Positions 3,001-39,517 of a DNA stretch of 64,000 bases are shown piece after piece (position 1 is the first letter of the stretch; every line of letters starts with the position of its first letter). The stretch spans positions 40,768 through 104,767 of the forward strand of contig FLMG01002348.1 in the NCBI GenBank assembly GCA_900088475.1, read 5' to 3'. The notes under the pieces were generated by a model. It was not told where the DNA came from. It did no database searches and saw only the letters and a program-made list of their open reading frames with translations. The position numbers and the translations under genes are program-made. The DNA is from Hyphochytrium catenoides (lineage: Eukaryota > Protista > Hyphochytriomycota).

Positions 3001-4794
3001 GGAGGAGGAGAACGCTACTGATAGGGATAGCATATGGAAAATGAACAAAGGTTACCTACCGTTGCACTTCTCTCTTCTGTCCGCCAAACGCGACCACAGT
3101 TCGGATGGAAGACAGCACCTCCGAGGCCACGGCCGCGGCCCGTGCATAAGCTTCCTGGGTCATGCTCTGGGCTTTCCCCGATGACCTAGAGAAAGAGACG
3201 CGAACGGATATAGAAGAGGGAAACAGGCGATGTCAACTAAGCAGAGCGGACAGATTAAATGAGGCAAGTGAAGGGGGATTTGAAGGACGAGTGAAGTGAC
3301 CCCTTATCATTGTCGCCTCCTGGGTCCCATAGGTCTTCCCATATTGGTTGACCGGCAGTCTTTAGCATACCTCACAAGATTCCATGCAGTGAAGCCCAGA
3401 ACTGGCAGCACGGAAATGATAACGAGTGTCAATTCCCAGCTTTTAGAGAACCCCAGGGCATAGCCTCCAATAAACATCGAGGAATGCTGGATACCGTCGG
3501 CAAACTTACGACCAATGCCCTCCTATGTAAGGCCACAAGTTAGATGTCAGACATAGACACATGCCCTCTAAGTAAACCCAAGCATCTCCGCCACGCAGGA
3601 TCATACTTTGACTCAAAGGTCATCAGCAAGTATGCGGGTAGAAACGACACAAACAAACCAACAATCTTGACAGTATTGCTACCAACGGTTGACGAGAGAC
3701 TAAGGCAAGGTCACAGCGAACTGTGAAACAGAAAGACAAAGAAGCTAGGGATAGCGTAATGTGTCCTAAGAAGCAGCAAAACGACAACGAGAGAGTAAGT
3801 CAACCTGAATGGCCGTTGTCTTTTCTACGACTCCGCTGACAAGGTCTCCAGAGTTCTTGAAGTCAAACCAGCCGATTTCCTGCCTCAAGATGGCAGCTAC
3901 ATAGTGCTTTCTCAGCTTCCTGGTCTGTCTCTCCGCAGTGGTGTTCCAGCAAAACGCTTGTAGAAAACCGGAAACGAGGGCGACCGCTGCAAAGATGCAG
4001 AGATATTGCACCTGCTTGAGCACCTCGTCCATAAACTAGCAACAACAAGAGAAGTGTGAGATGGTGGCAAGTGAGATCTTGCGCAGTGTCAGGCTAGTAG
4101 AGACATTCTAAAGAGAGAGACACTGAGTAACACGACATCAAATCCTGAACCTAGAGACAAGTGGACTGCAGTTATTATGGAGAGGGAAGGAGGATCTGAC
4201 GCGGTTCAGGAGTAAAGTGTGGATTAATCTACGCAAACGCCGAAAGGACATATACTGCAGCATGGCTCTTAAAGGTGTAGGGCGAACGTTCCAGAAAGTA
4301 GGTACAACTCCTACTTCGTCATTGGTCCCGTTAAGTGAATCAAAGAGCTGCCCAAGCACTACTGTCATCGCAGGCTGGACCAGACCCATCAGCACCGCTC
4401 CCACACTCCCCACGACCATCAGGAAGATATCAAGCTCATCTGCATAGGAGAAGATCCTAATGAAAGACGGAGTATTGGCTAGTGGATCATCCACATGGAT
4501 TGCACCCTCCTCTGGAGCCCGTTCATTAGGCATGGCAGGTTTGGCATCAGGCCTTGGGTCTCTAGTGGTGACAGACAGGTCACTCTTCCTCTCTGCCGCC
4601 TCTGTGGAAGGCCCAGATGTCTTCGGCGTCAGGGCCTGAAAGTAGGGTGCCTCAACAGGCTCTCTTGATCCCTCGGCCCCGCGCATATTCGAAGCCTCAA
4701 GGCACAAAGGTCCTGTAGCACTCGGATCCTCACCGGGTGAGCGCGCGGCCTTTGCGCCGATGTCGGAAGCACTAGGGCTGTGAAGTTGTGACAT
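1..4794 (-). CDS. ABCB/MDR (P-glycoprotein-like) full-length ABC transporter, multi-exon; TMD1, NBD1 and start of TMD2, 3' end runs off the window
   Basis: ATG at 4794 (MSQLHSPS...). TMD1 motifs [19 protein letters not shown] and [28 protein letters not shown]1 has FAYPTRP, Walker [11 protein letters not shown]-loop VSQEPVLF, signature LSGGQKQ, Walker [12 protein letters not shown] and AHRLSTI. TMD2 begins [14 protein letters not shown]. Confidence 0.95.
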
Positions 4795-5559
4795 TGTCTG
4801 ATTGCATTCCTCCGCTGCCAATTTCTCAAACGTCCAGCCGTTGAGCACTCGAAGTAGCACACAAGCGCCAAGGCTGCAGAAGTACGCAGTAAGAAAGGTC
4901 AGAACGCAACTACAAGTACGGCATGGTAGAACGACAGCGACGAAAGGCTGCTAAGCGAGACAGGACAAAGAGCGGGAGCAAAATGGAGGAGTGAGAGGCA
5001 GAGATGGAGCTGGATCGTGGGATGAACCGCTGCGCATAGGGTGTGAGCTCCAGGCAAACGGAGGCTACTAAAGATAAGAGGCATGAAGCCGAAGAAACCA
5101 ACACTGCAATATACTATCAGGATTGAGGCGAGCTTCTTACGCGGAAGGACACACCGGCGGCTGTTATGTACACTGGCGAGCAGCCTAAGGTAGAGTGGTC
5201 TTAGTACTCTTAGGGCACGAAGAGAAACGAAAAATGATGATCTGGGCTTTGGGCCTTCTCGACCTACTCTTATTAGCTCCCCTAGTGCAGCCAAGACATT
5301 GTCTCATCTACCGTCTCCCTCTCAACCCCCATCGTCTGGCGCTTCGTCAATATCGTCCATTGTGTCATCTGCATCGTTGGGCTAGGACGGGCACTTCTCA
5401 CGGCTTGGGTCTGCTCCTCCCTCCGCCTGTCTCACCGTCGACCTTACTCTTCTTGCCAGTCGACAATCCCACAACCTGTGGGCAGAAAGTCCCTTATCTA
5501 GACATTTTGGCCCTCTTCTCATGATGCCGAAAGGAGAGGATTTCTTTCGTCCTAAGATG

Positions 5560-5770
5560 CCGCCCAATAATCTTTCCTTCCTTCCTCTCTCTTTCTCCCT
5601 TTTTCTCTCTCTCTCACTCTCTCCTCTCTCATCTCTCATCTCTCCTCCTCTTCTCTCACTCACTCCTCTTCTAACTTCCTCTTTTCTCATTTGTCTCTCT
5701 GTCTACATCTTCTACGAACTCTGTTTCGTCTCTCTTTCCCTCTTTCCCTCGTCTCTCTCTTTGGTATCTT
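5560..5770. repeat. CT/GA-rich low-complexity tract upstream of the ABCB gene
   Basis: Long imperfect (CT)n run seen directly. Confidence 0.85.
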
Positions 5771-6329
5771 TTGGACGTTCTTCAGCCTTTATACCGCGTC
5801 TCCCTATCACAATGTATAATACAATATCTATACAACAGACACAGAACTGATTGATAGTTAAACCTCCCTCGTAACGTGTGTTACGTTCTATGATAATACT
5901 GAAACTCTACTATCTCTGGCACTATCGACTATCGCAAGCTCGTATCCTCACAAAGTTGCTGAAGTCAAGGGAACGACAGCGAAGACCACCGAGACACCAA
6001 GGTAAGACAACACCAGTGCGGCAGCGGCGCTGTTGAAGCGGCAACAACGTGAGGTATCTCCTGCCCTATCTCTGAAAATGTGGGGGCTCTAGCACCTCTA
6101 GTACTTGAGGAAGCAGTCCCTAGACTTTTCTCCTTAGTGCTGGTGCCATAACAGCAACAAGTGGATCCTCCGGCTTATAGATTAAGAGGAGGAGCCACAA
6201 GAAGGTGGATGATGAAGAGAAACGAAAGAAGCAGCAGCCGATGTCATGATGGTCAAGGAAAGAAGTGGCATGGGCCGGTATGTGAATGTCCAAGCAGGAA
6301 GAAAGGTATCGAGCAATAAACTACCTCTT

Positions 6330-28000: not shown

Positions 28001-29033
28001 ACTCCGCATTCTCTTCTTTGACAATGCAGAAGACGCTAATCAGCTAAATATATCATGAGAGAGTCGCTTGTGGTCTTGCCGCTAGAACATCATCATCAGT
28101 CTGCCGTCACCACCACTCCCGACGATGGTTCTGTCCTGCTGGTATAATACCTCTCATCGCACTGATAGAGCATATAAATAACAACGCGCGAAGAAAGGCA
28201 GGCAATTGAAGAGAAGAAGGTCGATGATGAACGACGGTTGTTGTTGGGAAGAAGAAAGGCAAACAACAGGCCGCCTTCTTCGTACACCATCAAAAGAAGT
28301 CCGTCCCAAAGATAGTTCAGCATGTGGAACACTGGCAAGTTGGGTTGTAAATTGGGAGCCATCCTATTCTAGGGTTTTCGGTTCAAGTAGTCGATATTAT
28401 TGGCGGACCAATACGTTTATTATTACAGCAGACTTTTAGTGGGACTACTGTTTTTGCTGCTGGGAACTTATTTTAGGTAGTCCTGGAGGATCACTGAAGA
28501 TAGCCTCTGAAGCTCTGACGAAAGTTGATGGATGAGTGGAGATGGGTTCTGATCAGTCATAATCTGGTGAGAGACAGAGTGACAGTAAGAGGAACGAAGA
28601 GATGCGTTCAGTCCCAATAAATATTACCTCCGGAAAGAGAAAGATACACGAAGAGAGCGTAACGAGACAGCAGACATACTGCTCCTTCTACTCTCTGAAC
28701 AAACCAAAGCATTGACAGTACGGGTAGCAGCAGCACCAAAGCAAGCTAAGGACGCGAAAAGGCTGAGCAGACGCAGTTGACATCGGACTGAGGAAGGTGA
28801 CAGGACCAAGCAGCGGCAGTCCTGGTGAGAGCTACTGGGGACAAAGGGCGCAGCAAGTAAGCCCTAGGCAAGAGAAAAACAGCCATTGGCCACCCTGGAA
28901 CCTATCGCCAATGGCAGTAGAGCAGTAGTTATCAGCTTCAATTGCTGGCCTCGCCTGAGGAGCTAGAGACAGTGAGAAGAGAGGACCGCGGCTAAGCTTG
29001 TCAGGCGACGGCCAAACCGGACGCCGCAGCACG

Positions 29034-32000
29034 ATGCAGTCTGGTATTGTCCCTCCGAGTGGCATTGTCCCATTACTGCACATGCAGCTTCCTACCGAGG
29101 CACTGTCGCGAAAAGCTAGGGAAGGAGTGGTCTTTGCAGCCAAGTATGGAGACGTTGACGTCAGCAAGATAAGAGATAGGCTGCTAAGCGGAGGAGAGGG
29201 AGTCTGGGACCCACAAGTGGCTGACGATATGAAGCCAGGTCACTCTCTCTCTCTGTCTCTCTGCCTACTGCTTCCTCGTGTCGTGGAGTTTTCCTAGGAA
29301 GAGCGGCATATCAGAGATCCCACTGAGCTAGCGTCTTCGCTTCTGGCTAGAATGGTCTCGTTGACATCTCGGCTGCTCTCTCTCTTTTCCTAGCACCTCT
29401 CCTGCGTACTCTGTTGCTCTATGTGATGCTGTGTGAATGCCCGTCCGTTACTTGTCACTCTTTCTCTCTCCTTTCTTGTTTTGTTGACGCATACTGCCTG
29501 TGACCTATCGCCTTTAAGGAAAAGCCTAACACTCAGTCTCAGGCAAGAGCACTTATCAGAAGACTTCGTCTGCCGACGGGACCCTGCCGGGAGCTATCCC
29601 TCTCTCGCGACCATTTCACGACAAGCTCGGCGTCAAAAAAATTGTCCTGATCTTCGCGGATAATGATCTGGAGCAAGTCTACTCGTTCCCAAAGTGGGAA
29701 CAATGGAAGGACCTTCTTCTTCCTATTCTCGCGACCTTCAGCATTCCCCTAGAAAGGGTAAGCAAGTGGGAAGGGAGGAACTGACAAAAGAAGAAAGCTT
29801 ACCCATAAGCACCTCATTCCTTCTTGCTCATCTTTTGCCTCGGTTTCTTGAACGTTTTGTCTCTGCGTTGGTTTCCATTCTCCCTACTTCTGCCAGTCTA
29901 TACCATGTCTCTCTCGCTACGGGCTGGGATTCTCTACCTTGCTTTTTAGGACTTACCAGTGCTTTTGGCATTGAGAAGGTGGTTCGATGTCTGTTTGCCA
30001 GGCTGCCCCCCGGCGTCACTATCCCTCCTCATCACGATAACGGGTATGAATCGAAAGGAAGAGAGAGAGAGAGAGGAGCAGAGGGCACAAGATTTTTTGG
30101 GGAAGGTACTTACTAAAGGATAGTGAAGAGAACGCTTACAGATGAGAGATAGAAAATGACTCAGGGAAAGAGATGTGACTCGGGCGGGACCGAAAAGGAT
30201 TAACTAGGCAGGATTATCCCACCGGATAGCGAGGAGAACGCTTACTGATGAGAGATAGAAAATGACTCGGGAGAGAGATGTGACTCGGGCGGGATCGAAG
30301 AGGATCAACTAGGCAGGATTATCCCACCACTGACTTTGTAAAATAGTCGCTGGGTCCGGATGAGCCACAGAGTCCATGTCCCGATTATTACGCACGAAGA
30401 GGTAAAGTGGTTTCGCTCGCCCTCTGCTCGGTCCATAAGTTACGCCTATTCTCTCTTCTGGGCTGCACGTTGCATTCGCAGAGAGGGTCGGATTGACGGC
30501 ACCTTTGTCGGGTTCCCACTTCTGAAGGCACTTGTTGCTGTCGTCGCCCGTTAGTTCTGTAGCTCTTTTCGTCTAGCTAACTGCGCTCATTGCTATCCTT
30601 GCCTTTCTTTCTTGATGACCCGCTCATAGTGACTTCCCGCCCCTCCTATAGGTGAGCTTTCGGATAGGTTCAGTTCCTGAGGAGATGCAGAGATATTCCT
30701 TCAGTGAAGGTTGACTTTTCTCCCTTTCGTAGCTGCCACTTGGCTCCAGGCATTACCCAGCATTTCGATTCCTGCTTGACTGCAGTTCCAGCATTCTAAG
30801 CTTTCGCTTACCTGATGTTGAAAATTAGAGTACCTTAAGCCTTCTTTGATCACGCACTTTCCTTTCATTCCTGTCTCTTTAGCCGCCTTTCCTTCTCCTC
30901 GGAGTAATTTCCCCTTTCCGGCCCGATACGGTTGCAGGCAGTGTTATAGAGCTGAATAATGCCGCCAAACATGCCGTGACAAACGGTTGGGACCAGTACC
31001 GGATACACCTCATCTTTGACTGGGTGGAGACACCAAGAGAGCTTCCCTCAATGTAAGTATGAGAGTACAAGCTATGCATGCACTCGCACCAGGGTACATC
31101 TACTTGACCCCTCAGCTGCCTGAATATCTACAGGGCGAGTCTCTTACACATTTCTTGTCTTTGATGTAGTGCCCTCTCTGCTTCTCAGAAGATAAGGCAA
31201 AAAAGAGGTAAGCCCCTGTGCAGCTAGAGACCCTGGACCAGGGGACACATCAGAGGCGGAGTTGCTCAATCCTGCTGTACCCGTCGGTTGTAGGTCGAAT
31301 AGAACTAGTGACAGCAGCAGAAGAAGAAGAAGATCGCGGCAAGAACCTGCAGTCAGACAAGACAGCATCCAAAAATCTGCTATCCAAGGTACTCTCCTTC
31401 CCTCTGCTCTAATCTCTTAATGCCTTTGGCACCCGCTCTTTAAGGATTGCCTTCCCTACGCTTAGGCCTTGTAGCTTGGTATCCGCTCTTTAACTGCTGC
31501 GTACCCTACTTTGAACCCCTGTAGATTGAGAAGATAGCTGAATCGAAGGTGCCCGGAGGGGGAGAGCTGCTACGGAAGAGTCTTCGCCATTATTTCACTC
31601 AACAGATTGAGGCAGAGGTAAGAAGCTCTCGGCTTCCCAGTGTGAGGCTCCTGCTTGCAGCGCTGTTCCCAAGACTAGAGGACAACCATTGAGTTATTCT
31701 TTCTTCCCTTCGTCAACAATTGACGGGACTGCGATATAAATACGTCTCTCGTCTCATGTGCACTTTATCTCTCCCACCCGTGCGTTAGGCCTTTACACGC
31801 ATTCTCCTTTCACTCCTTTCCCTGGAGGATTGCGAGAAGCTGAGGGCAAATAGAGGAGAGGAGGAGGGCTTGCTTGACCCTTTTGTGAAGGAGGATGTCT
31901 ATAAAGTACTCTATGACATAGACTCGTACATGGTGCAAGAAGTCGAGGAAGTGCTTGAAGGCATAAGATTAGGGACCATTCCAAAGGAGCCTCCTCGAAA

Positions 32001-34523
32001 TAACATTGAAGAGCTTCTACTCGCTAAAGCAGGTAATGAGTCTACGACATGGATGAGTTGATGACAAGCTATGGAGATTGCGCTACACCTCAGTGTGGCC
32101 GTCATACAGCGGTGGCGTTCAAACCGACCTTACGAACTCTTCTTGTCGCTACTGTTTTTCCTACTGCCACTTCACCGTCCCGGCCGCATTCTACTTGCGA
32201 AGGCTCTAGTGGTACCCCGGATACCAAAGATTGGCATCCGGTGCGCTATATGATTATTGGATCTCAGAAATGCGGCACGACAGCGCTCTATGAGTATCTA
32301 TGGTGCGTGGAGTCCACTTTGTGTCTTTTGGAACTTCTGGTCCCGCTTTATCAAAAAATTGCTTTCTTTGCTCTTGATTAGTATAGCATCCGCTCCTCAT
32401 CTCTACACTTTCTTTAGATCTCCTGTCGGTTTCCCTTGTTTCCACCGTCAAAGTTAGCTCATGGAGTTTATCCCAATCTCTGCGTATCCTTGATTCCATG
32501 GACCATAGCCAGCACCCTTCGATTGAACGATCACGCCAGCGAGAATCTCACTTTTTCGACTGGCATTGGGAGGAGATGAAGCGCGTTAAACTGACGGAGA
32601 AATTGGCGGCTGAAGCCGAACACGTGGCAGGTAAAACCTATCTCAGCAAGTGACCAGAAGCAAGGCGGAAGCTTTACAGAGCCCAGAAGCAGTGCGGTAG
32701 CTGTTCGAAAACGACAGCAGTAGTACAGTTTCTCCAGATGGGAGAGGGTCATAGAGTACGAGAAAAGAAGATGTAGCAATGGGACCTTGCACACCGAAGG
32801 CAGCGTTTCTTGCTAGATCTCCTATGCAATGAGAGTGAATAATGTGCTACTAGATTCTTGTTGGTCAGCTAACATTGTCTCTAATGTAGCGGCGATTGGC
32901 AAAGGCCCAGATCTAGAGACCGAAGAGCTAAGGTGAGAAATTCGCTAACGCAAAATGTTGGAAAGAGAAAGCAGTCCAATATGGGAAAGTCAGAATGAAG
33001 ATGACATAGAAACATAAGGTGAAATGACGCTTGACAGGAAACTAAGACATCTTTTCATTTAGGCGCAAGCTTGTTCTGAAGCTGTATAGGAGTCCTCAAG
33101 AGCTGCACCTGCCTCTCATCATTGGTGACTCCACACCCAGCTACCTTCTGATGGGAAGAACCGTGGCCAGAAGAATGAAGCAGGTAGCTGGGTGCAGCTC
33201 TTCTCCATTGCTGCATTTCTCGATCTCAACCCGTCTATCTGGCTTTAGGCGCTTCCCAACGTAAAGCTCTTGGTAATGCTGAGGGAGCCTGCGGCTCGCG
33301 CTTATTCGCATTACCAGATGACAGCTGACCCAGAGGGCACACCGAAGCAAATTGCCAGCAGAGAGACAGTGAGGGGCCTTTCCTTTGAAGAGCTCATGAA
33401 CAGAGATATGAAGTTGCTGCAGGTACCTCGAATAACACCTCCCGCGACCAGCTATGGTGCATCGCTGGTTTCTTCTTTCTGCTAGTTTATCTTACGTCTT
33501 CGTTCAGTACCTCCAGTCCATCCTGTCGCCCTTGAATGGGTTAGTCAGCTCGTTAGGATCACGTTCTCTTCATCTACCTTGCCTATGATTCCCTCAATTC
33601 TCCCGCGAGAACGCTCTGAGCATTTATATTAACTCTTTGATGCCTTCATGACCAACGTCCTTCTCCGTTCCACTGCTTACCACGTCTCCTGTCTCTCTCT
33701 CCGCCCTCCTTCTGCTTATGACTATTCTCATTGCATGATCTAGGATTTCGACGTCACACCTGAGGCATCTCCAGAGGCCTTCCAGCGCTATGCGGACTCT
33801 TTACCTCTTGGTATACTTTATTGGGGCTTCTGGTGCAGTGCCCCTTATACTAACGTCCTTCCTGACTTCCCACTCCGCATTTGCCCTCCATGCTTGCGCG
33901 TCTCTGCCCCCACATACGGGCTTCAGGTCATGGCTGCCACTCTTATGTGGGTCGGGGGCTTTACGTGTTCCAACTGCTTCTATGGCTTTCTGAGTTTCCG
34001 CGAGACCAAATGCTTATCATTCCCCTCAGCAGCTTCAAGAACAAGGAGTACGTGCAGGTGAGAGACAAAGAGGGTCCAGATAAGTGGGATAAGGGGCAAG
34101 GACGAGAGAGAGAGAGGGTTTAACAAGCAATTTCTGTTGAAAGCGCTGGCCAGAGACAGTAAAGGAGCTATGATGCCCAAGTTCTCTTCCCCCTGCTTCT
34201 AGCTCTTGCTTTGTCTTCATCTATGATTGAGTGCATCTATCTTAACTGCTGAGCTTTCGGTTGCTGTCTCCTCCCACCAAACTTGCGATGTAATTAGCTT
34301 CCCATTTACTACCTATTCCTGTCTCTGCTCTCTGCTCTGTAACCAGAATCAAATGAAGGTGGTTTTTGCCTTCCTGGGTTTGCCATATCACCCTGTGGAG
34401 GATACAGCCCCAAAGAACACAAGGGCTTATCAAAAGATAGCGACGGAGACAGAAGAGAAACTTAAAGCGTTCTACAAGCCGTACAACCAGAGACTGGCTC
34501 AGACCTTTGGCATTGTTCTTTAG
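29034..34523 (+). CDS. Asp/Asn beta-hydroxylase-type 2OG-Fe(II) dioxygenase fused to a heparan-sulfate-sulfotransferase-like PAPS sulfotransferase; multi-exon
   Basis: Dioxygenase: VRCLFARLPPGVTIPPHHD (HxD at 30030-30038), SHRVHVPIIT, ELNNAAKHAVTN, RIHLIFDW. Sulfotransferase: IIGSQKCGTTALYEYL (5'-PSB), RESHFFDW, GDSTPSYL, MLREPAARAYSHY (3'-PB), YVGRGLY, FLGL, LKAFYKPYNQRL. Linker exons can be joined in frame. Confidence 0.85.
30118..30328. repeat. Intronic ~106-bp tandem duplication (30118-30223 and 30224-30328)
   Basis: Two near-identical units ggatag(t/c)ga(a/g)gagaacgcttac...ggcaggattatcccacc. Confidence 0.92.
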
Positions 34524-35435: not shown

Positions 35436-38400
35436 ATGGCTCAGGCCAAGCGCATCAAGCTGCTCTCGTCTTTGACGGTGCCCTCGATCGAATGGAGTGC
35501 ATCCGGGCAGCGGAGGAGCTTTTCCTCTACCATTACTGGCGGGGGAGGTATGCGGGGAAAGTCCGGCACTACGACCAGTAGCACCGTTTTGGCTCCACTA
35601 GTCTCATTCATCTGCTCCCTCTCCTTCTCTATCCTGCTGCCCCTCTTTCTCGTGCAGCCATCGTGTCATTCTTTTGTCTGCCTCTTGATCTTTCCTGTGT
35701 CTTCCTTTTGCATCCCTGATTGTCTCTCTTTCCCTTCAAGTCCATTATCTTGACCTCCCTCTTTATCCTGCTCTGTCCATCGCTGCTCTCTGAGGTAGAT
35801 GCCCTCCAAGAAAAGATATTGAGCCTGTGCAAGAGGCGAGGCTTCGTCTTCCAGGGGTCTAATATCTACGGCGGGATGAGAAACTCATACGACTACGGAC
35901 CATTAGGTGAGGGACTCACGTCAAACCGTCTGACGGCTTCTACGTTGAGTGCCTACGGCTGTAACTATCCTTTACCTTGCCCGCGCTTCTTGTGATATGT
36001 GGCCGCTTTGGTCCTCTCGGCTGCAGGTGCACAGATGAAGAAGAATATAATGGACGCGTGGTGGCAAGACTTTATAGAGCATAGGCTGGACTGCCTCGCA
36101 CTAGATTCCTCTATCATGCTCCATCCCGAGGGTGAGAAGCAGTGAAGCATACGCTTACGTCTCGCTATCCGTCGTTCTTCTACGTTGTCCTTGGTATCTC
36201 TGGGTCATCGTAGAGCCACCTACCTCTCTGTGGCTTGGTCCTTTTCGTCGCTATGGCGTCGTTGCTGCTATCTTGCTCTCTTCCTATCTTCTCGCACTTC
36301 TGATTCATCCTCTCTTGTGTGGATTGTTCGATTTATGAGACAGTCTGGAAAACGTCTGGTCATGTCGATAAGTTTGTCGATCCGATGACTTCCTGCACTA
36401 CTTGCAAGGCAAGGCACAGGTCAGGGTAGAAAGGACTCTCTACTTTTAGTTACCCATGGCATTTTGGCAAAGCATCCTCCCCGTCTCTCTCTCTCCAGTA
36501 TATATGTAGTCCACCCCACTCCTTTGCAGTCTATCCCGGTTTATTTGTGGGTCTGGGTAGTCATCTCACCTCCTATCTTCCTCTCCCTGTTGATGCGAAC
36601 TCAAGGGTCGCTCTTCCGTCTCTCTGCCCATGAGCACGGTTCAGTCTATCCCCTTTTCCATATCACTCTTCTTCCTCGACATCCTAGGCCTTGGCGATAA
36701 CATCCTCTCTGAGCTCACAGAATATAGCTAATCCATGCGTCTCACCTTTCAACCGTTGCGTCATAAATGGAGACAGGACGGATAAATTGATTGAACAGAA
36801 GCTTTCTGTTCGTGCAGACACTCTTTCTCTCTCTCAGTTGGACGATCTAGTTGCTAAGAACGGCCTGAAATGTCCCTCATGCGGGAATGCCTCTCTAACT
36901 GGTAAGGAACTTGTGAGGAAAGCTGAGCCCAATAGAGGGACAAACAAAGAAGAAGCACATAACATCTGGATCTAGTTGAGAGGTTCTCTTCTGCTCGGTT
37001 ATGATTGTGATCTCTGTCTATCTTAGAGTCGAAGATGTTCAACCTTTTGTTTGAGACCAAGATGGGAGCTACAGCCAGTGAAAAGTAAGTTTCTTCCAAC
37101 GGCCGCATTTGTTAGAATTTATCGTCCCAACCCAGGGCAGAAGCAGATTTAGAGCAAATAAAAGGACGTAGAACGCTAAGAATGCCAGGAAGAACCGGGA
37201 CGACTGAGATGTGCTATACAAAGTATAGGGATACGAAAGGTGGGGGAGTTGCAGGACACCTTCAGTCATCAGTCTCTGATGGCGGTGCTCCGCAGCTGCT
37301 AAATCGAAGAGATAGGTACTAGCATAGACAGCAGTAAGAAAAAGAGAGCACAGAAAGACCTATGAGCGCAGTCCTCTCAGCGAAGAATGCTTTCTTCTAG
37401 GGAGAGCTCTGTCTACCTTCGCCCGGAGACAGCTCAAGGCGCTTTCATTAACTTCGACCTCGTGGCAACGGCCTCAAGGAAGAAGCTTCCGTTTGGTCAG
37501 TAGAAAAACCGCAAGAAGAGGCGACCAAGGAAATTGACACTGATTTTTCCCCCTAACAGGTATTGGTCAGATGGGCAAGTCCTTCCGCAACGAGATCTCT
37601 CCCGGTAATTTCCTCTTTAGGACGGTAGAGTTCGAACAGATGGAGCTGCAGTACTTCTGTGACTTTGCGGAAAGAGAAAAATGGTACTGGTAGTCTCTCT
37701 TCCCGCCTTACAGCAGTTGTTCTCTTGAGTTGTCAGCTCCTCGTTAAAGCCAATTCTGAATTGACCTTGATCTGCAGGTATGCTTACTGGGTGGACTATT
37801 GCTTTGACTGGCTAGTCAAGCTTGGAATCCCGTCCGAAGACCTGCGAAAGCACCAGCATAAGACCGAGGTGGGTCCACCTCTCTCTTCCTACTTGCTTCA
37901 TCTTCCGGCCTAGGAACTAAAATCCTAGGGTTTGCCCTGGTTTGGCCACCATCAAGTTTCTCCCTTTGCTCTCATCTTGTGACTTAACATTCCTTCTTGC
38001 TGCGTTTCCTCCGTGATGACCAGGAGCTGGCACACTATGCGCATGCGACAACAGACATCGAGTTCCGTTTCCCTTTTGGCTGGAGCGAGCTTTGGGGCAG
38101 TACGTGGCGAGAAGCACACTTGGGCCTGTTATTTCCCCGTTGATTGTTGAAGCTCAAGCTATTAGCTTTCCTGGCTCTATTAACATGTTCTTTATCTTGT
38201 TCAACACTCCGTTCGAAAACCAGTTGCAGATCGTGGTGACTATGATTTAAGGAAGCACAGTGAAGCTACTGGACAGGACCTCGCGTACAAGGATAACATG
38301 GACCAGAAGAAGGTTGGTCCATCGGACCTCTCTCCTTCCCTTGTAACTTAAGGCTTACTAAGTCTTCGTGCACTGCATACTTCTCGTGCGTATCAGTCCA

Positions 38401-39517
38401 TGTACCCTTGTGCGATTGAGCCCGCGGTAGGAGCCAACCGCCTGCTTTACGCCTTCTTGGTTTCTGCTTATCATTCCGAGGAGGTAGAGGGCAGGTAAGG
38501 AAATGTTGGGATCTAGCTATTAGAGGAAGGCCTGTCCTCTGCAAGGCTGTTACCTATGATCTTGTGAAGTTAGAGATGCCCAGCATAAGAAAGTGTGAGA
38601 CTCCTTCGTGGCTAACTATTATGATGATAGGGAAAGAGTCGTTCTTAGACTACATCCGCAGATCGCGCCGTATCAGGTGAGCCCAAGAGTCCATTTGCTG
38701 CTTTGTAACTACGAGAATATCTTGTCTCCCTGTGTCACATAAGTTCGTACTTTTACGGTCATACACCATAAAGTTGCCTTCATACACTATAACAGTTGGC
38801 TTTTCAATTCGAGGAGCTTATGCCCTTCGCCCCTCTTCCTTACGCTTGCTTTGGTATACGTAGGGTTGTGGTTGCCTATCTCCTTGAGACACTTACGTGC
38901 GTTCTTCAATAGTTTCTTGTTTCCAAAAGTAGAATTCCGCGCCTAACGCCACCTGTCACAGCTGGCTGTTCTCCCCCTTCTCAAGAAGCCTGAGTTCGTT
39001 CAAGTCGCCACTGAGCTTTCCCACAAGCTTGTTAAGGGCAGACGTGTAGACTTTGACGTAACAGGGAGCATTGGTACCTATTTCAACCCATCTTCCCGCC
39101 ACCACTTCCTCAATGAGATGCTTTCATTTCCTCTTTGCCTCTTGCTCCGTCTGAATCTAAGCTATAGACTACTGGTTCGTACTGTTCCCACGTAATGGTC
39201 AGGGTCCCTTAGACCTCTTTTTCTTTTATACCAGACTTCATCATTCTCCCCGTCAATTCGGCATTTTTCTATCACAGCTCTCCTCGATCACCTCCTCACG
39301 CTTGTGTGCCATTCCTCACTATGTAGGTCGTCGGTACCGGCGTCAGGATGAGATTGGCACTCCTCTTTGTGTGACGGTAGACCATGAGACTCTGACCGAT
39401 GGGACGGTGACAGTCAGAGCGCGAGACTCTTTGAAGCAGATCCGGGTGCACAATGATGAGCTCGTAACAACTGATATTTACAGCTTGTTTGAAAGGTTAA
39501 ATACTATAGATACATGA
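35436..39517 (+). CDS. GARS: Glycyl-tRNA synthetase (class II, homodimeric alpha2 type), probably organellar/mitochondrial; multi-exon
   Basis: [92 protein letters not shown]. Basic/Ser-rich presequence ending RRSFSST. Confidence 0.95.

Follow-up and report, generated by a model that had tools for sequence, protein, structure and literature searches.

Human ASPH and the HS3ST and NDST enzymes are lumenal type II proteins, and heparan sulfate (HS) sulfotransferases usually reside in the Golgi. Physical and genetic links between hydroxylases and sulfotransferases have been described by Iyer et al. (2010), who reported fusions of an FIH1-type JmjC domain with a sulfotransferase in Monosiga and stramenopiles as well as bacterial operons of a beta-hydroxylase and a sulfotransferase, and who proposed that hydroxylation is followed by sulfation (PMC2938197). 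Here, we analysed a stretch of 64,000 nucleotides from Hyphochytrium catenoides (assembly GCA_900088475.1, contig FLMG01002348.1, positions 40,768 to 104,767 of the forward strand). This stretch, which we call the window, is intron-rich eukaryotic DNA with an overall G+C content of ~49%. At positions 29034-34523 on the plus strand, it contains a predicted gene that encodes, in this order, an AspH-like 2-oxoglutarate (2OG)/Fe(II) oxygenase domain, four linker exons and an HS3ST/NDST-like sulfotransferase domain. Judged from the sequence, both domains very probably belong to one gene, one mRNA and one polypeptide. The best overall explanation, which we consider likely, is a single fused oxygenase-sulfotransferase gene that encodes a soluble protein of ~685 residues and for which coupled chemistry is proposed.

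Gene structure

The gene model consists of ~17 exons, all joined by GT-AG introns with consistent phases, and these sum to 2055-2058 nt or ~685 codons. It starts with the ATG at 29034. Along the predicted exon chain, the reading frame from exon E1 to exon S6 meets its first stop at 34521. Exon borders were derived using tblastn of fused proteins and a profile built on 17 fused relatives as anchors; the evidence in the window is given exon by exon, and structure predictions were made on orthologues. This family profile matched 12 segments of the window in strictly collinear order, with independent E-values (i-E) that range from 0.24 for the shortest segment to 1e-23. Profile positions 4-214 correspond to window positions 29046-31038, and profile positions 341-634 correspond to 32232-34508. 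In the rest of the 64-kb window, no match to the family profile better than i-E 7.8 was observed on either strand. The features of the model are the following, where PSB and PB denote the 5'-phosphosulfate-binding and 3'-phosphate-binding motifs.

29034-29238 (+): exon E1, start codon and conserved N-terminal motif MQSGIVPPSGIVPLLHMQLPTE...; collinear from Met1 with Saprolegnia P0010 and P0102; donor GTCACT, phase 1; profile positions 4-61, i-E 1e-7
29543-29757 (+): exon E2, first part of the oxygenase domain LSRPFHDKLGVKK..., with family-invariant R..HD..G; profile positions 64-121, i-E 2.6e-19
29976-30043 (+): exon E3, VVRCLFARLPPGVTIPPHHDN; HHD at 30030-30038 gives the HxD iron ligands; profile positions 118-143, i-E 1e-10
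30347-30401 (+): exon E4, (G)RWVRMSHRVHVPIITHEE, with invariant W..HR.H.P motif; profile positions 143-164, i-E 4.7e-6
30652-30709 (+): exon E4b, VSFRIGSVPEEMQRYSFSE; weak donor GTTGAC, phase 1; profile positions 162-181, i-E 0.24
30938-31052 (+): exon E5, (G)SVIELNNAAKHAVTNGWDQYRIHLIFDWVETPRELPS; distal His at 30970-30972 and 2OG-binding Arg at 31000-31002; ends in phase 2; profile positions 180-214, i-E 3.9e-17
31053-31058 (+): donor GTAAGT, which contains TAA at 31054-31056
31170-31207 (+): linker exon L1, (I)ALSASQKIRQKR(G), with the family-invariant Q and R of RQxRG (Q233, R235)
31294-31388 (+): linker exon L2, (G)RIELVTAAEEEEDRGKNLQSDKTASKNLLSK
31525-31617 (+): linker exon L3, IEKIAESKVPGGGELLRKSLRHYFTQQIEAE
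31828-32032 (+): linker exon L4, DCEKLRAN...EELLLAKA, helix-type sequence; donor GTAATG, phase 1
32203-32302 (+): exon S1, SSGTPDTKDWHPVRYMIIGSQKCGTTALYEYL; 5'-PSB loop at 32259-32282; profile positions 341-362
32509-32649 (+): exon S2, QHPSIERSRQRESHFFDWHW...; catalytic E-x-H-x-x-D at 32543-32560; profile positions 363-404
33063-33183 (+): exon S3, RKLVLKLYRSPQELHLPLIIGDSTPSYLLMGRTVARRMKQ; profile positions 429-456
33249-33422 (+): exon S4, ALPNVKLLVMLREPAARAYSHYQMTADPEG...; 3'-PB motif at 33282-33314; family profile i-E 1e-23
33744-33810 (+): exon S4b, DFDVTPEASPEAFQRYADSLPL; PEAFQRYADSLP compared to PKTFQAYADRLP of S. parasitica
33927-34057 (+): exon S5, (G)HGCHSYVGRGLYVFQLLLWLSEFPRDQMLIIPLSSFKNKEYVQ; profile positions 535-580, i-E 3.9e-15
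34347-34523 (+): exon S6, NQMKVVFAFLGLPYHPVEDTAPKNTRAYQKI...QRLAQTFGIVL, stop codon TAG at 34521-34523; profile positions 579-634, i-E 4.2e-16

Some of the borders are ambiguous. The acceptor of E3 may be at 29976 or at the tandem site 29979, and the donor of S2 at 32631 or 32650; for the acceptor of S1, 32203 is preferred and 32110 and 32230 are likewise in frame. The intron between E3 and E4 contains a 105-bp unit in two tandem copies (92% match, 30118-30328). The next gene downstream has exons that resemble glycyl-tRNA synthetase (~35720-39500, plus strand).

Fused relatives

Exon S4 (58 codons) was compared to 1.8 billion representative proteins, which resulted in 100 matches. Many of these proteins have 590-790 aa and were aligned at residues 410-570, which points to a long N-terminal extension. 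The original prediction, which was made from the sequence of the window, had suggested looking for the combination of Asp_Arg_Hydrox and Sulfotransfer across taxa, and we found both domains in more than 40 proteins of 520-790 aa from oomycetes, ochrophyte algae and metagenomes; these are collinear with the exons of the window, beginning at the same first Met. The motifs HHDxGxW, LNNxAKH and KxGTT occur in that order in 20 of the proteins retrieved with the exon. A word search with a Saprolegnia member returned 52 proteins, most of them with both Pfam domains precomputed (Asp_Arg_Hydrox and Sulfotransfer_1/3). Named members come from Saprolegnia, Achlya, Thraustotheca, Aphanomyces, Pythium, Nothophytophthora, Tribonema minus, a pelagophyte (Pelagophyceae) and Phaeothamnion, and all of them are 'hypothetical' or automatically named. 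In the literature, we found no characterisation of the fusion or of its locus tags.

The closest relatives of the window gene are oomycete proteins, which share the same Met and have 47-52% identity over 11 segments (~450-500 aligned residues). Sequence comparison identifies the window gene as an orthologue-grade member of a fused family that is conserved across stramenopiles (oomycetes and ochrophyte algae). In one metagenomic member, P0018, the fusion is encoded by a single uninterrupted open reading frame (ORF) of 1962 nt on a 102-kb contig (L002:6001-7962, plus strand), and hence the fusion does not depend on the prediction of introns.

Additional observations concern individual matches. 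The top match of the exon search, P0001 (2247 aa), is unrelated; it contains 18 copies of ALPNLKKLVILRQP and was rejected as a repeat-driven false positive. The metagenomic protein P0078 carries a sulfotransferase of the same clade as the fusion family behind an N-terminal Methyltransf_16 domain (a protein-lysine methyltransferase family), which is thus a second type of partner for this sulfotransferase. On the contig of P0018, a Glyco_transf_90 gene (3879-5963, minus strand) lies head-to-head with the fusion gene at a distance of 38 bp. Synteny with this neighbour was considered for the window and rejected, as no such neighbour is present there.

The interval between the domains

The interval between the two domains (31053-32202) begins with an in-frame TAA (31054-31056), which the original prediction had weighed as a possible gene end. 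This TAA lies within the consensus donor GTAAGT. Because any phase-2 intron that starts with GTAAGT reads G-TAA, it carries no weight as a gene end, and homologous linker exons follow it. Together, L1 and L2 read RQKRGRIELVTAAEE, compared to RQVRGRVELISATDE in Saprolegnia, which is equally far from the oxygenase domain. Their junction, RQKR-G-RIELVTAAEE, agrees with RQxRGRVEL, a family-invariant stretch located behind the oxygenase domain of the single-chain relatives. L3 contains LRHYFTQQIEA, compared to CRHYFIEQIDA in oomycetes. A direct splice from 31052 to 31525 was also considered and rejected as it is out of frame; the micro-exons L1 and L2, which were found by homology to Saprolegnia, fit instead.

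We compared an oomycete linker profile to all open segments of the window on both strands. L3 ranked first (i-E 0.053, the best match in the whole window), L2 second, L1 fifth and L4 twelfth, and the four exons are collinear with the profile. With a family-wide linker profile, which is too diverged, the linker exons were not detected, whereas the oomycete-only profile detects them. Pairwise linker scores reached z 2.4-6.8 against shuffled controls, with 4.4 for L1 (against Saprolegnia residues 225-235), 5-7 for L3 and 3.1-3.5 for L4 (orthologue residues 307-341). The linker signals are each weak, and their joint position, strand, order and frame would not be expected by chance.

We thus arrive at a single fused gene from the in-frame GT-AG exon chain, the homology of the linker exons to single-chain orthologues and the intron-free relative. 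In this respect the original prediction, which had placed both domains in one protein, is supported. Its implied novelty is overstated, since the architecture is present in public proteomes and the idea was published in 2010. Comparison with these proteins supports the predicted fusion gene as very probably real, and its architecture is already on record, with automatic names, for the public proteomes of oomycetes and algae.

Active sites and predicted structure

The oxygenase domain contains HHD (30030-30038), AAKHAV with the distal His (30970-30972) and YRIHLIFD with the Arg (31000-31002). The sulfotransferase domain contains the 5'-PSB motif GSQKCGTT (32259-32282), the catalytic ESHFFD (32543-32560) and the 3'-PB motif REPAARAYSHY (33282-33314). 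The active-site residues H141, H142, D143, H194 and R204 of the oxygenase are invariant in 30 of 30 family members, and the same holds for K349, G351, T352, T353, E372, H374, D377, R477 and S485 of the sulfotransferase. The original prediction had proposed an AspH-like domain with an HHD...H triad, a helical linker and a sulfotransferase with 5'-PSB and 3'-PB motifs. All of these motifs are present at the positions given here, and the linker is helical in the model described below.

With the Pfam profile Asp_Arg_Hydrox (PF05118), only exon E5 matches when the window exons are taken singly (14.9 bits, E 0.024; the gathering score is 22.6 bits). Orthologues score higher (34.9 bits for P0009 and 31.8 bits for P0085), and E<1e-3 was obtained for 14 of the 30 that were sampled. 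The family PF05118 extends to LpxO-type enzymes, which hydroxylate lipids. Sulfotransferases of the HS3ST/NDST type are covered by PF00685/PF13469; for the profile Sulfotransfer_1, single window exons reach a subthreshold 12-13 bits and all 30 sampled orthologues match. Compared to the family profile, the sulfotransferase exons of the window have i-E values of 1e-7 to 1e-23. We also scanned 185,579 bacterial and archaeal genomes for the oxygenase motifs and found 28 motif sites, of which none was confirmed by tblastn; this is a weak negative for a close relative of the oxygenase subfamily.

A model of the N-terminal domain, made for residues 1-230 of the orthologue P0018 from an alignment that included the window exons, is predicted with a mean confidence (pLDDT) of 91.4 as a double-stranded beta-helix (DSBH). 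Foldseek and VIA-align comparisons of this model gave Z-scores of 12-14 to many 2OG oxygenases, including 6n1f (14.0), Cpz10 (13.2) and human AspH (13.0-13.2). The sulfotransferase half of the orthologues matches the PDB sequences of 3rnl and HS3ST3A1 at E ~1e-14, with ESHFFD aligned to EPHFFD via P0018, and in Foldseek it resembles 3rnl, NDST1 and HS3ST1/3/5. The sulfotransferase is HS3ST-like in fold and chemistry, and because hydropathy shows no type II anchor of the kind seen in the animal enzymes, we do not class it as an HS enzyme; the acceptor of this family need not be a glycan. A full-length model of the Saprolegnia protein (pLDDT 89, predicted TM-score (pTM) 0.77) contains five linker helices at residues 243-336. 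As modelled, the linker is ordered and helical over ~100 residues. With Foldseek, no solved structure containing both domains was found.

N-terminus

The N-terminus MQSGIVPPSGIVPLLHMQLPTE matches MQAAPTPPPGVVPLSHKRRPTE of Saprolegnia residue for residue from the first Met. A Kyte-Doolittle scan of the window gene revealed no hydrophobic anchor at the N-terminus. Furthermore, 27 of 28 relatives contain no 19-residue window with a Kyte-Doolittle hydropathy of at least 1.7; the single exception lies internally, at residue 515, where an intron seems to have been retained. These scans agree with the original prediction, which had noted that a signal anchor is missing at the N-terminus. Together, they argue against a Golgi type II topology of the predicted protein.

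A possible two-step modification

Neither catalytic set varies within the family and the linker is ordered, and on this basis two consecutive steps may be proposed. The oxygenase would place a hydroxyl on its substrate, which could be a protein side chain, a small molecule or a lipid. The attached sulfotransferase would then esterify the new hydroxyl with sulfate from 3'-phosphoadenosine-5'-phosphosulfate (PAPS), outside the secretory pathway. Such a coupled hydroxylation and O-sulfation of one substrate is the most economical reading of the sequence, and we give it about even chances. More tentatively, the product might be a previously undescribed non-secretory modification, in which a 2OG-dependent hydroxylation is immediately followed by O-sulfation of a protein side chain (e.g. 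beta-sulfoxy-Asp/Asn) or of an acyl or alkyl chain (sulfolipid), with the rigid helical linker passing the intermediate between the active sites; we regard this as possible rather than probable. Stramenopile algae are reported to make alkyl-diol sulfates. As such fusions are usually a sign of consecutive steps, the family offers a handle on a hydroxylation-sulfation product, be it a protein mark, a metabolite or a lipid.

Alternative explanations

The two domains could also belong to two adjacent genes, by fission or mis-joining, with a hydroxylase of ~240 aa that ends at the TAA at 31054 and a sulfotransferase that starts at ATG 32049 or at a Met within L4. The oxygenase domain is already complete at this TAA, and ATG 32049 opens a frame across the L4-S1 intron (32049-32202) that reaches the 5'-PSB motif in exon S1. 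However, the TAA belongs to a perfect GTAAGT donor, as expected for a phase-2 intron with that consensus, and within the next 770 nt there are four GT-AG exons, all in frame, that follow the linker order of the orthologues and include the invariant Q and R. L1-L3 contain no ATG, and relatives encode the fusion in a single ORF, which makes two separate genes improbable. We give even less credit to an enzyme of the secretory pathway or the Golgi that would be anchored in the membrane through a further, overlooked exon upstream, in the manner of ASPH and the HS sulfotransferases of animals. Such an enzyme would fit the lumenal type II topology of the HS3ST/NDST relatives and of human ASPH, and the 5' end of the window gene is predicted. 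It would also have contradicted the original prediction, which had named an upstream exon with a Golgi anchor as evidence against itself. This exon is disfavoured by an in-frame stop at 28956-28958, 78 nt upstream of the ATG, and by the shared Met1, which together with the ~20 residues that follow can be aligned with the starts of independent family proteins from oomycetes and metagenomes; an anchor-like segment is moreover absent from nearly all of the relatives that were scanned.

If a single fused protein is accepted, its domains might still not act in sequence on one hydroxyl. They could serve separate sites or molecules, or one of them could function in binding or regulation. This would be in line with the fusion of the same clade to Methyltransf_16 in P0078, and hence to a partner that does not make hydroxyls, and with the missing precedent of a solved two-domain structure. 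Yet the active sites of both domains are invariant in 30 members, the linker is ordered in a full-length model with pTM 0.77, and oxygenase-sulfotransferase fusions or operons recur independently in Monosiga, stramenopiles and bacteria, where they were read as hydroxylate-then-sulfate systems (PMC2938197). We therefore consider domains that act independently of each other unlikely, though less so than two genes. For the preferred explanation of one soluble fusion with an AspH-like oxygenase, several points have to be counted on the negative side. Every splice junction is predicted, the linker exons, taken singly, resemble the oomycete profile weakly (i-E 0.05-16), and an internal start at ATG 32049 could yield a product with the sulfotransferase only. 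The location was judged from hydropathy alone, which is a crude test. For both domains, the window exons taken singly stay below the Pfam thresholds, and searches of the PDB with the sequence of the N-terminal domain, as a single sequence or as a profile, returned nothing significant. On structural grounds, AspH is not separable from other 2OG oxygenases because the Z-scores are tied at 12-14, so that the assignment to the AspH family comes from the Pfam profile and not from the structure.

Comparison with known systems

The biochemical interest lies in the family more than in this locus, for which the value is mainly one of annotation, with a 17-exon model and an apparent stop that is the TAA of a donor. 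The family spans stramenopiles, including pathogens of fish, crayfish and mammals (Saprolegnia, Aphanomyces, Pythium insidiosum) and several algal classes.

Among the oomycete members are Saprolegnia diclina SDRG_13619 (XP_008617938.1, 651 aa), S. parasitica SPRG_01829, Achlya hypogyna ACHHYP_06074, Aphanomyces invadans H310_06635 and homologues in Pythium oligandrum and P. insidiosum, which are annotated as 'Aspartyl/asparaginy/proline hydroxylase domain-containing protein'. They have the domain order, the Met1 motif, the RQxRG and CRHYFIEQI linker motifs and the catalytic residues in common with the window gene. They differ in intron number, with ~16 in the window gene, few in the oomycete genes and none in the metagenomic relative, and parts of the linker have diverged.

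Human ASPH (PDB 5apa, 6yyu) shares the DSBH fold with the N-terminal domain (Z ~13, root-mean-square deviation (rmsd) 3.5 Å over 172-178 residues). It also shares a distal His that is followed by an Arg ten residues on, and the orthologues match Pfam Asp_Arg_Hydrox. In contrast, the identity is only 12-14%, and the window family lacks the tetratricopeptide repeat (TPR) domain and the membrane anchor. ASPH is reported to use two His only, whereas the window family has the full HxD...H triad. The best Foldseek match of the N-terminal domain, and tied for the top in VIA-align, is Cpz10 (PDB 7v4f, 7v4m; Z 13.2, rmsd 2.9 Å over 150 residues, 20% identity). Cpz10 acts as a beta-hydroxylase on a small molecule in the biosynthesis of caprazamycin. 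Because its fold class thus also hydroxylates small molecules (PMC9814697), the substrate class of the N-terminal domain is to be taken broadly. Unlike the window gene product, Cpz10 is a bacterial stand-alone protein of 168-182 residues without a fused sulfotransferase.

The sulfotransferase domain is similar to HS3ST1/3A1/5, NDST1 and the bacterial 3rnl (E 1e-14 to 1e-7), with the PSB loop, EPHFFD and the 3'-PB motif aligned and TM-scores of 0.62-0.76 when normalised by the target. It differs from these proteins by an identity of only ~18-22% and by extra inserts, and the window family has no type II anchor or lumenal targeting. Finally, the systems described by Iyer et al. (2010) resemble the window family in that they connect a 2OG hydroxylase with a P-loop sulfotransferase, either physically or through genetic linkage (PMC2938197). 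Their fusions involve a JmjC/FIH1 domain with the sulfotransferase at the N-terminus and are predicted to be extracellular (PMC2938197), whereas in the window family the oxygenase is of the AspH type and N-terminal, and secretion signals are absent.

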